Positions 699 to 3,303 of a stretch of 64,000 bases of DNA are shown here, one piece after another. Position numbers and translations under genes: made by a program. The notes below the pieces were generated by a model. The model saw only the letters and a program-made list of their open reading frames with translations. It did not search any database and was not told the origin of the DNA. The stretch's first letter is position 1. Each line of letters starts with the position of its first letter. The stretch is taken from the sequence record PP695294.1. One strand, given 5' to 3'.

Positions 699-844
699 TT
701 AAAGACACGGTTCCGATAGAGAACTGGTCTTTACCTGCAGCGGTATACACCGCTAAGCTTTACCGGTAAACTTAAGAAAACACAAACGCAATTCTTCGTT
801 ACTCGCTTTCATCGCAGGTGAAAGCTCACTTAGGAATTCAGCTC

Positions 845-1333
845 ATGGCCGAAATTGTCATTCTTTCCTCATCTTCAGATTTAACGGAAGCACAAAATAA
901 ACAGCTGTTGGGGCTGCATTATAAATTTCTGAACCACCAACGTACCATACTCCATATCGAAAAAGGTGAGATTCCGAACCTCACTCTGGAGAAACTGTTG
1001 GCGGGGAACCGTGCTTGCGTTGCTCTGGAAGGGGGCACCCCTGTTGGTTACTGTTTGTATCGCGTAATCGCTGGGGTTCTGAAGATTCGTACGATGTTCG
1101 TGTCCGAAATGGCACGCCGTCGCAAAACGATGACGCAGATTTTTGATGCGCTTGATGTGAATGAACAGTTCACCAGTGCGCATGGGGGAATATACGCTTG
1201 CCAGGAAGCTGGTATTGCGTTCTTTACCGCTCGCGGTTTTGACAAGACCGTCTCTACAGACGGACAATGGCTTGAATTTAAGAAGCAGGTTCCTGCGGAA
1301 GCAGATGAACCTTTAAGGACTGCGGTAGCATAG
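845..1333 (+). CDS. GNAT-family acetyltransferase
   Basis: VALEGGTPVGYCLY / IRTMFVSEMARRRKTMTQI (motif A-like) / QEAGIAFFTARGF (motif B). ATG845 has AGGA upstream; the track uses GTG818. Confidence 0.7.
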   Translation: MAEIVILSSSSDLTEAQNKQLLGLHYKFLNHQRTILHIEKGEIPNLTLEKLLAGNRACVALEGGTPVGYCLYRVIAGVLKIRTMFVSEMARRRKTMTQIFDALDVNEQFTSAHGGIYACQEAGIAFFTARGFDKTVSTDGQWLEFKKQVPAEADEPLRTAVA

Positions 1334-1358
1334 TCCTGTTTTAGCACTCCTTACGATT

Positions 1359-1386
1359 ATGCCTCACTATGAGTGGGGTATTTTTA
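1359..1386 (+). terminator. Intrinsic terminator after GNAT gene
   Basis: ATGCCTCACT-ATG-AGTGGGGTAT stem with G-U pairs, followed by a T-run. Confidence 0.55.
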
Positions 1387-1403
1387 CGCGAGGAGTGCTA
1401 TTT

Positions 1404-1613
1404 ATGTTTCACCGTCCTGGGTTTTCAGCTTTAAACACCGATGTCTGTTGGGCTGAGTACGAGCGGGTGAAGGAGTTCTTACCCGTAAATCCAAAACACA
1501 TCAACGTGGGTACTATCGGGCGTGTTGCGTTCGATGATACTCCGCTGAGTACGTGTATTAAAGCTGCGCTTGGTACGCTGCCAGCGTCTATAGTGTTTGA
1601 GGAATTAAAATGA
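1404..1613 (+). CDS. 69-aa protein containing a degenerate EF-Tu N-terminal segment
   Basis: GAGGAG upstream of ATG1404 (the track start 1359 lies in the terminator); HINVGTIGRVAFDDTPLSTCIKAAL vs EF-Tu [25 protein letters not shown]. Confidence 0.7.
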   Translation: MFHRPGFSALNTDVCWAEYERVKEFLPVNPKHINVGTIGRVAFDDTPLSTCIKAALGTLPASIVFEELK

Positions 1614-2128
1614 CGGACGTTCGTGTTGACATATATGGGGAAATTCATACCACGGCCGATCGTAATCGTGTTGAATGGGCGATCATCGATAACCATCGGA
1701 AAAAACCATACGATTTTTTACTGTGTGAAGAACTGGGGCCGTATGAACATCACACTGCAAAAGCGCAAGATAAGGCATTAAAGGAGAAGATGTACTCTAT
1801 TGGGCCCATGGGGCTGGAGTTGGCTAAGAAACTCGGCATCCCTGCTATTGGGATCGATGACTGGAGCGACGCAACCTACGCTAAAGATATCAAGGATAAA
1901 AAGGGAATGGCTGTAAACTTTAGCCGTTCTTTTTATATTCGTGAAACTAAAATGGTTGCAAAAATTAAAAAGTATATGGCAAAAGGGCGTTGTGCTGTTA
2001 TGCTTGGCGACTCACACTTGCGCACCACGAAAACTAAAGAGCTTGGTGATGCGTCCCTTATCTGGGAAACGTTTAAGGATAATCCTGAAGTGAAGTTTCA
2101 CAGGAGCCCTAAACGCGAGATTGATTAA
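1610..2128 (+). CDS. Putative Tiki/TraB/EreA/ChaN-fold metalloenzyme
   Basis: Ordered motifs YGEIH, LLCEE, RETKMV, VMLGDSHL; ATGA coupling to the upstream gene. Confidence 0.55.
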   Translation: MTDVRVDIYGEIHTTADRNRVEWAIIDNHRKKPYDFLLCEELGPYEHHTAKAQDKALKEKMYSIGPMGLELAKKLGIPAIGIDDWSDATYAKDIKDKKGMAVNFSRSFYIRETKMVAKIKKYMAKGRCAVMLGDSHLRTTKTKELGDASLIWETFKDNPEVKFHRSPKREID

Positions 2129-2146
2129 ATCTAAAGGAGCATTAAA

Positions 2147-2569
2147 ATGGTTACCGCTATTCGCGAAACAAAATCACTATACGATCATTTATCAGAAGAA
2201 GAAACAGCCTTATTCTACGACCTGTTACCTGAAACCAAAGCAAATGTTCAGTGGTGGTTACGTTTAGCGCTGCGTGATAAAGTTGGGGAAACGCCGGTTA
2301 GTATTCTCGCACACACGTTGGACATGACACCCATGATTGAAATCGCGATTACCCGCCCTAAATTCTGGCGGCCTGGTATGGTGCGTGAGGCGTATCTACT
2401 CCAACGCTTAGGTGTTGACCCGGAGAAGTGTTGGCGTAAGATGGACGACCATCGCTACCGTGAAGAAATTACGAATAGCCTCAACACTATGTTGGCAATG
2501 AAACGACTCGGTATCGAACACGAAGGTTTCGAGTCTGCGGTGCAAGCGTGGGTGAGAAGGAATAGCTAA
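2147..2569 (+). CDS. Hypothetical protein, 140 aa
   Basis: AAGGAG RBS, ATG start, operonic. Confidence 0.75.
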   Translation: MVTAIRETKSLYDHLSEEETALFYDLLPETKANVQWWLRLALRDKVGETPVSILAHTLDMTPMIEIAITRPKFWRPGMVREAYLLQRLGVDPEKCWRKMDDHRYREEITNSLNTMLAMKRLGIEHEGFESAVQAWVRRNS

Positions 2570-2818
2570 ATGCAAAAAACAATCATCGGAATAACGGTTG
2601 GTTCTTTCTGTGGCTTCCCTACCCCACAAACAGAACCCCAATATTTGGGCGCAGGCAAACCTGATCCGGAAGTCCGTAAGTTGCGCGAAGAAGCAAAAGC
2701 CAGAGTTCTTACTGAGCTGGAATCGTTGCTTCAGTCTCCGGTTATTTCACAATGGGGTATGGCAATAGATGTCACTAGAACTGATCGACGAGGCTATTAT
2801 CTCCCACGACCTGTTTAA
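2570..2818 (+). CDS. Hypothetical protein, 82 aa
   Basis: ATG directly after the previous stop; overlaps the macrodomain gene by 50 nt. Confidence 0.5.
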   Translation: MQKTIIGITVGSFCGFPTPQTEPQYLGAGKPDPEVRKLREEAKARVLTELESLLQSPVISQWGMAIDVTRTDRRGYYLPRPV

Positions 2819-3269
2819 CGCGCCTGAGCGCTTCAAGGTCGTTACAGTTAACTGTGTTGGTGCAATGGGAAGGGGCATTGCTTTGGCGTGCCGAGAACGC
2901 TTCCCATCGCTTTATAATGACTATCGCCAGAAATGTCGTAAAGAGCAAATCGTTATCGGTGAGGTCTATTGTTATCCTGAGGAAGGGGTAATACTCCTTC
3001 CTACTAAAACCCATTTTCGCTATAAATCGCAGATTTACTATGTCACGTCCGGCATTGATGCGCTGGCGCGACTAGGGGAAGACTTAGAAGGAGGGATTGC
3101 GATACCGCCCCTAGGGATGGCTAACGGTTGGTTACGTTACCATGAGCGATTGGAAATCTTTATACACTTACAGAAACGACTACAACACACGGAGCAGACT
3201 TATCGATTCTATTTACCGGACACACTGCTAAAGGAAGCAGAGAAAATCATCCCAAATAGTTTCAAATAG
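2769..3269 (+). CDS. DarG-like macrodomain (ADP-ribose glycohydrolase)
   Basis: DLF..., VTVNCVGAMGRGIALACRERFP, LLPTKTHFR, IAIPPLGMANGWL match DarG-type macrodomain motifs. Confidence 0.85.
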   Translation: MSLELIDEAIISHDLFNAPERFKVVTVNCVGAMGRGIALACRERFPSLYNDYRQKCRKEQIVIGEVYCYPEEGVILLPTKTHFRYKSQIYYVTSGIDALARLGEDLEGGIAIPPLGMANGWLRYHERLEIFIHLQKRLQHTEQTYRFYLPDTLLKEAEKIIPNSFK

Positions 3270-3277
3270 ATATTATC
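3267..3277 (+). promoter_or_regulatory. Candidate phage early promoter core (TAGATATTATC)
   Basis: Same core recurs at 12352, 19910 and 51589 in intergenic positions. Confidence 0.5.
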
Positions 3278-3303
3278 ATCAGGGCACATTACAAAGGAGC
3301 ACA

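Follow-up and report, generated by a model that had tools for sequence, protein, structure and literature searches.

The window analyzed here is a stretch of 64,000 nucleotides from sequence record PP695294.1. Over bases 800–3300 it matches Salmonella phage 1252 (PP695294.1) with 100% identity and SPN3US with 98.6%. SPN3US is a Seoulvirus jumbo phage of 240 kb; the source, phage 1252, is an SPN3US-like jumbo phage of Salmonella. The gene of interest is an open reading frame (ORF) of 69 codons. Its ribosome-binding site, GAGGAG, lies 8 nt ahead of it, and its stop codon (1611–1613) overlaps the ATG of the next gene. A 69-residue protein had been claimed at this position from the sequence alone, and the frame is indeed an annotated CDS in relatives. 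GenBank lists the product as a hypothetical protein in both phage 1252 and SPN3US (SPN3US_0192, gp192), and it is referred to below as gp192. It gives full-length profile matches to PHROG 28329 (1.1e-52) and PHROG 12626 (4.2e-17). The 69-residue protein is laid out as a phage-specific N-terminal helix with the conserved motif C-W-x-E-Y-x-R, an EF-Tu-like core, and a variable tail. The features of the locus, together with the EF-Tu-related loci from other phages that are discussed below, are collected in Table 1.

Table 1. Features of the gp192 locus (window coordinates) and loci of EF-Tu N-terminus mini-ORFs in other phages (locus:coordinates).
Feature	Coordinates	Strand	Basis
GNAT acetyltransferase gene (gp191 homolog, PHROG 3810)	845–1333	+	PHROG, Pfam; invariant upstream neighbor
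Spacer RNA element, 70 nt	1334–1403	+	Folding energy, covariation
69-residue protein gene (SPN3US_0192 / gp192 homolog; PHROG 28329)	1404–1613	+	ORF, ribosome-binding site, CDS annotation in relatives
EF-Tu-like segment, residues 28–57 (EF-Tu ~8–38: strand β1, P-loop, helix A)	1485–1574	+	HMMER, NCBIfam EF-Tu models
Strand motif HINVGTIG, residues 32–39 (H-x-N-V-G-x-I-G)	1497–1520	+	Invariant columns in family alignment
Degenerate P-loop GRVAFDDT, residues 39–46 (EF-Tu: GHVDHGKT)	1518–1541	+	Alignment to EF-Tu
Variable downstream cassette (gp193 homolog, 172 residues, PHROG 14325)	1610–2128	+	Presence/absence across relatives
Macrodomain protein gene, 166 residues	2769–3269		NCBIfam, PADLOC match to DarG
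EF-Tu mini-ORF	L022:1489–1668		
EF-Tu mini-ORF	L023:1495–2214		
EF-Tu mini-ORF	L024:1495–1818		
EF-Tu mini-ORF	L025:1501–1902		
EF-Tu mini-ORF	L026:1501–1680		
EF-Tu mini-ORF	L028:689–1276		
EF-Tu mini-ORF	L029:479–850		
EF-Tu mini-ORF	L030:686–1066		

The region downstream of gp192 is variable. The gp193-homolog cassette is absent from the SPLA3 and SPFM phages, and the slot is occupied by unrelated genes in most relatives. Presence of gp193 alters the last nine residues of the 69-residue protein, and in phages lacking the gp193 homolog (SPLA3, SPFM) gp192 has a different 12-residue end. Homologs of gp193 were found only in Erwinia phages Huxley and Caitlin, with 63–66% identity, whereas the flanking GNAT and gp192 proteins are only about 41–47% identical to those of Huxley. 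These comparisons suggest cassette exchange at the slot. In one Salmonella-labeled record (P0004), a deletion fuses gp192 residues 1–57 to the end of the gp193 gene. The macrodomain gene further downstream matches DarG (NCBIfam 7e-31, PADLOC 3e-32), and its product is probably the counterpart of the PhiKZ macrodomain protein AdfM, which counters DarTG2 by removing DarT2 ADP-ribose from phage DNA (PMC13309987).

Homologs of gp192 were located by tblastn in 48 phage genomes. Hosts of phages with the family are Salmonella, Escherichia, Proteus, and Erwinia, and members are also present on metagenomic contigs of about 220 kb. Seoulvirus forms contain 69–72 residues and Machinavirus and Erskinevirus forms 109–110 residues with an extra tail, overall identity between genera being only about 49%. 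Several SPFM records align to window bases 800–3300 in 30–32 pieces and contain truncated GNAT and gp192 genes (P0009–P0012, P0032–P0036). Gene decay in the SPFM phages (LR5359xx; P0009–P0012) was considered and rejected; the GNAT gene is fragmented too, and the records look like indel-rich assemblies in which the truncations are assembly errors. Erwinia phage Wellington (L027:1984–2471) carries the same GNAT gene followed by a compensated variant of the spacer hairpin and a gp192-like gene divided between two reading frames, with the N-terminal motif part running from 2066 and the EF-Tu-like part inside an annotated CDS (2172–2471). A frameshift, an insertion, or the presence of two genes might each account for the split. 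With two frames the gp192 gene may be dispensable in Wellingtonvirus, which would count against the joint role with GNAT that is proposed below.

The sequence-only reading had described gp192 as a mimic of the N-terminus of EF-Tu, one of the most abundant bacterial proteins. Alignment to E. coli EF-Tu from MG1655 reproduces both the 12 identities among 25 core residues and the altered P-loop, which reads GRVAFDDT where EF-Tu has GHVDHGKT. Shuffled controls support the similarity: only one of 5000 shuffles reached the Smith-Waterman score obtained with the MG1655 protein (z 7.2). When the 69-residue protein was compared by phmmer with all PDB sequences, 26 of the 26 matches at E≤10 were EF-Tu, all within EF-Tu residues 8–37 (E 0.076–1.4). 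All four matches in an NCBIfam scan were likewise EF-Tu models (E 0.016–0.033), with a score of 14 bits that does not reach the curated cut-off of 522. A Pfam scan found no domain in the 69-residue protein, GTP_EFTU (PF00009) included, and the distant member P0017 scored 14.2 bits against GTP_EFTU, under the cut-off of 26.5. Taken as a single sequence, gp192 thus gives a borderline match to EF-Tu (E 0.02–0.5).

Comparisons made at the level of the family gave stronger matches. A profile from eight close homologs matched EF-Tu about 20-fold better than the single sequence. When 1.8 billion representatives were searched exhaustively with a profile, more distant members came to light, and two of these, P0014 and P0017, contain 12 consecutive core residues that are letter-for-letter EF-Tu. 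With a profile of 11 members, 59 EF-Tu entries were matched at E-values between 2.9e-8 and about 1e-5 and eIF2-gamma came next at E 0.006; the long-form members alone matched EF-Tu models at about 1e-6. Two sets of profile matches were discarded as spurious sums of weak repeat matches, namely those to the long repeat proteins P0016, P0020, and P0022–P0024 and those to the neck repeats of DC-SIGNR. We conclude that the homology of the gp192 core to EF-Tu residues about 9–38 is real, because the family profile and the identities in distant members, rather than the single-sequence values, settle the matter. A further pairing that had been proposed, of YERVK in gp192 with FERTK in EF-Tu, is possible, but the length of the gap varies from 8 to 15 residues within the family and HMMER makes no such pairing. 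The nearest ESM Atlas clusters are short phage 'EF-Tu GTP-binding domain' proteins (score 0.62), which serve as a lead only. The likeness to EF-Tu is already on record in GenBank, where certain relatives bear the labels 'putative elongation factor Tu', 'putative GTPase', or 'putative translation elongation factor'; as to function these labels are wrong. Our literature search found no paper on gp192, phage EF-Tu fragments, or an EF-Tu decoy, and the family is uncharacterized in the literature, though annotators had seen the likeness before.

The relationship to EF-Tu resides in the protein and not in the DNA. The resemblance of the DNA to tuf, which had been pointed out, is merely what shared codons give, and blastn against 5,426 E. 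coli genomes yielded nothing at E 10. This result argues against a recent capture of tuf DNA, as do saturated synonymous sites and the differing codons among phages; across relatives, 2–9 of the 13–15 residues identical to EF-Tu share the tufA codon. The idea of a captured tuf fragment therefore survives as derivation from EF-Tu but not as recent DNA capture. Because there is no DNA similarity to tuf and codons differ among relatives, we take the gp192 core to be an ancient EF-Tu copy that is maintained at the protein level. Pairwise dN/dS values of 0.08–0.19 for unsaturated pairs indicate purifying selection. An RNA library from a 99.4%-identical phage shows three differences within the gp192 ORF; all fall at third positions and are synonymous, as read by eye from the codons. 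Residues invariant in the 11-member alignment (M1, C15, E18, Y19, R21, H32, N34, V35, G36, I38, and G39) make up the phage-specific N-terminal motif and the EF-Tu strand H-x-N-V-G-x-I-G, and this strand motif also holds in all isolate sequences examined.

The P-loop, which follows directly on the conserved strand, has degenerated throughout the family (HVDHSRS, QVDHGRS, QVEHSRT, QVCFGKP, HVGFSGS, RVTFSGT, and RVAFDDT). Members keep the strand without GKT: GxxxxGK[ST] occurs in none of about 20 distinct sequences examined, and QVCFGKP and QVDHGRS come closest to GK[ST]. Degeneration is most advanced in the window's clade; the Erwinia-phage genera retain the EF-Tu-specific residues H19, D21, and H22. 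The 69-residue protein terminates about 12 residues past helix A and contains neither the G2–G5 motifs (switch I Thr, DxxG, NKxD, SAx) nor domains II/III, and the extra tail of the 109–110-residue long forms is unrelated to EF-Tu. Since no member retains the phosphate-binding residues and the remainder of the G domain is missing, we conclude from the sequences that gp192 has no capacity to bind GTP and cannot be a GTPase. The statement that nucleotide binding had been specifically destroyed is borne out for the loss of GK[ST], which extends to all members examined, but a protein of 69 residues without G2–G5 could not be a GTPase in any case.

The 70-nt spacer that separates gp192 from the upstream gene is predicted to form a stable RNA structure (−32.3 kcal/mol, z −5.9). 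An outer 9-bp stem (1343–1351 with 1391–1399), in which AGCUCUCCU pairs with AGGAGAGCU, buries the Shine-Dalgarno sequence AGGAG of gp192; inside this stem lie an inner hairpin (1362–1378) and then a U-run (1379–1385). Among 11 phages, pairing is intact in 97% of outer-stem cells and five pairs show compensatory double changes, and the covariation score was reached by 0 of 500 shuffles. Besides those in the window's lineage, compensated variants are present at locus L016 and in Wellington. The conserved pairing forms a Shine-Dalgarno-sequestering hairpin with its base close to the end of GNAT: the outer stem, which is conserved, starts 6–9 nt past the GNAT stop, and the minimum-free-energy fold computed for the window has its base at that stop codon and also pairs part of the start region. 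The hairpin is unique within the window, and no Rfam family matches the spacer. Because a ribosome terminating at the GNAT stop would melt the fold that buries the Shine-Dalgarno sequence, the arrangement suggests translational coupling of GNAT and gp192. In RNA runs X1–X4 from the 99.4%-identical phage, window bases 700–2500 are wholly covered at high word depth. A contig from library X2 (741–1615) contains exactly GNAT and gp192, with breaks at 741–770 and 1586–1615, and X2 depth changes from 1091 to 705 across the gp192/gp193 border. The X2 contig agrees weakly with coupling, as contigs in an RNA library cannot prove transcription.

The upstream neighbor of gp192 is a GNAT gene in 14 of 14 contexts examined, which comprise Seoulvirus, Machinavirus, Erskinevirus, and two metagenomic lineages. 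Spacer length is 66–70 nt in these contexts and 82 nt in Wellington. The GNAT protein belongs to PHROG 3810 and matches Pfam Acetyltransf_1 at threshold, and in the searches made its homologs were confined to this phage group. Comparison with PDB sequences revealed no recognizable subfamily and no match to tRNA-acetylating toxins. The usual GNAT acetyl-CoA motif is R/Q-x-x-G-x-G/A; by eye, the Seoulvirus proteins have RRRK-x-M and the Erskinevirus homologs RRRG-F-M at this position. Because the motif is atypical, with RRRK rather than RxxGxG/A, activity of the putative acetyltransferase is uncertain. The linkage through a structured spacer, which the sequence-only reading had overlooked, points to a joint function of gp192 with the enzyme, with the caveat that adjacency in a dense phage genome can reflect shared timing only.

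Known systems offer partial parallels to such a pair. TacT/TacA and AtaT/AtaR resemble gp191–gp192 in combining a GNAT of about 160 residues with a small protein under coupled expression. In those systems, however, the antitoxin gene is upstream and specifies a ribbon-helix-helix protein, whereas gp192 is downstream and has neither a ribbon-helix-helix nor any Pfam domain, and gp191 has no PDB sequence match to TacT/AtaT-type toxins. Like gp191, the phage enzyme AcrVA5, which disables Cas12a by acetylating it, is a small GNAT from an accessory region; no accessory mimic protein is known for AcrVA5. In EF-Tu itself (TufA/TufB), strand β1, the P-loop position, and helix A align without gaps to the gp192 core, but gp192 holds only about 30 of the 394 residues, has lost GK[ST], and carries phage-specific flanks. 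The best matches to gp192 are EF-Tu tryptic N-terminal chains (PDB 2HCJ, 5I4R), free polypeptides of nearly the same residues as the gp192 segment; unlike gp192, these chains are cleavage products with an intact P-loop. The tryptic N-terminal fragment of EF-Tu remains in the folded G domain.

AF2 models of the 69-residue form (pLDDT 62, pTM 0.28) and of the 110-residue form (pLDDT 53, pTM 0.29) are of low confidence and show the EF-Tu-like strand as coil between two helices. A complex prediction with GNAT, E. coli EF-Tu, and gp192 scored 0.00 and is not usable as evidence. We tentatively favor, with confidence that stops somewhat short of even, a model in which gp192 serves as a binding module that is produced along with GNAT and acts with it. 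The module would present the EF-Tu strand and helix to another protein. The strand is probably unfolded alone and would pair with a partner's β-sheet; an unfolded strand that needs a partner sheet fits the predictions, and the poor model is not itself evidence for it. The spacer RNA would bury the gp192 ribosome-binding site until the ribosome finishing GNAT opens the structure, and because of this opening by the terminating ribosome the two proteins would most likely be made together and act together, with gp192 as a partner of the acetyltransferase, its specificity subunit, or its regulator. The two genes lie in a genome region in which the DarG/AdfM-like anti-defense macrodomain is also encoded. 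Homology, selection, P-loop loss, gene linkage, and RNA structure are shown by the analyses above; coupled translation, binding to GNAT, and any link to host EF-Tu biology are inferred.

A different account, possible though on balance unlikely, holds that the EF-Tu origin of gp192 is only history and that the strand-loop-helix now serves as the folding or oligomerization core of a small protein whose job is unconnected with EF-Tu or its partners. Consistent with an exapted relic, the window's clade no longer has the EF-Tu-specific P-loop residues H19, D21, and H22, and only hydrophobic or glycine core positions are invariant. The family-specific residues C15, E18, Y19, R21, and C51 match the EF-Tu-like ones in conservation, and no published EF-Tu binder is known to read residues 9–38. 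Such a relic is harder to reconcile with a 12-residue stretch that is exactly retained between genera whose overall identity is about 49%, and with the existence of independent EF-Tu N-terminus ORFs in unrelated phages; both observations argue for selection on the likeness itself.

These ORFs emerged from a comparison of EF-Tu residues 1–60 with phage genomes, from which bacterial contaminants were set aside. Short ORFs starting with the EF-Tu N-terminus are present in Aaphi23 (ORF27), in Vibrio phages henriette (VPDG_00052), 150E35-1, 1.244.A, 207E48.1, and Va2, whose copy carries the label 'elongation factor Tu', and in Burkholderia phage FLC9 (gp386); in Shewanella phage 1/4 the motif is near the C-end of its protein. 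The host groups represented are Vibrio, Burkholderia, Aggregatibacter/Haemophilus, and Shewanella. Most of the mini-ORFs end in an Arg/Lys-rich C-terminal tail, and GK[ST] is kept in some and lost in others. In the four longer Vibrio phage proteins the tail has the common motif NP[FY]-x-x-K-[HN] and continues with basic residues, and Va2 and 150E35-1 retain the RGIT switch-I motif. The mini-ORFs share with gp192 the same EF-Tu strand and P-loop, often degenerate, but differ from it in that the copy begins at residue 1 and keeps KFERTKP and in that none has a GNAT neighbor. Because no homology is detectable outside the EF-Tu part, the mini-ORFs are probably independent captures. At least four unrelated architectures copy the EF-Tu strand and P-loop, including gp192, the basic-tailed N-terminal copies of Vibrio, Burkholderia, and Aggregatibacter phages, and Shewanella phage 1/4. 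No other observation argues as strongly as this recurrence across unrelated phages for selection on the likeness to EF-Tu itself. A bolder reading, which we consider unlikely as it stands, is that the first strand and P-loop of EF-Tu are a recurrent target of phage mimicry and that the GNAT–gp192 pair is a two-part system which modifies, guards, or counterfeits EF-Tu in the course of infection. If this were true, an as yet unrecognized factor of host or phage would read that part of EF-Tu, perhaps while the protein is nascent or after it is cleaved.

The sequence-only reading had viewed gp192 as a decoy or interaction mimic; as a stand-alone decoy it would sequester or block a host immune effector or toxin recognizing EF-Tu. 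EF-Tu recurs in phage-host conflict, in Q-beta replicase and contact-dependent toxins besides Lit, type IV Thoeris, and Avs7. Lit cuts EF-Tu at G59–I60, and Doc acts on T382. A decoy would suit both the known role of EF-Tu as target or cofactor of Lit, type IV Thoeris, and Salmonella Avs7 and the position of the gene in a variable region, beside a cassette slot and with an AdfM/DarG-like counter-defense gene. The type IV Thoeris caspase, however, cuts EF-Tu at R45/R59 (bioRxiv 10.1101/2024.10.24.620036), and Salmonella Avs7 binds EF-Tu domains II/III (PMC13581612). The published cases reviewed act on EF-Tu switch I or domains II/III, and none of the EF-Tu-directed defenses reviewed is reported to read residues 9–38. 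Because the known systems act at G59–I60, at R45/R59, or on domains II/III, outside the copied segment, the decoy idea is weakened. In addition, PADLOC returned no defense or anti-defense family match for gp192, and the copied strand is buried in folded EF-Tu, where a sensor of native EF-Tu would miss it. We regard the decoy as rather improbable.

Less probable still, and in our judgment doubtful, is that the free strand-helix tunes host translation, either by inserting into newly made or cleaved EF-Tu (or into a related GTPase) or by competing for EF-Ts or the ribosome. The EF-Tu N-terminal tryptic fragment of 37–45 residues is a separate chain in the top-matching PDB entries 2HCJ and 5I4R, and from its staying bound to the rest of EF-Tu the segment can associate in trans. 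Against such a modulator, the phage needs host translation, and this clade has lost the P-loop residues through which EF-Tu contacts EF-Ts and the ribosome; the complex prediction, which gave no signal (score 0.00), is evidence neither way. Finally, chance similarity in a non-functional ORF, to which the single-sequence E-values of only 0.02–0.5 might have pointed, is refuted by the profile E-value of 3e-8, the 12 consecutive identities in relatives, and dN/dS values of 0.1–0.2, as well as by the occurrence of the gene in 48 phage genomes, and retains a negligible probability.

Taken together, derivation from EF-Tu, selection, and a dead P-loop all hold in these sequence comparisons, and on this evidence we rate gp192 as a case of host-protein mimicry. 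The selected copy of the EF-Tu strand and helix, together with the mini-ORFs, suggests an unrecognized interaction surface or folding step of EF-Tu that is exploited by phages. The close pairing of gp192 with the acetyltransferase offers a concrete and testable system of two genes in SPN3US, a model phage that is genetically tractable. Even if gp192 were only an exapted scaffold, it would still show cleanly how a phage can domesticate a fragment of a host gene.
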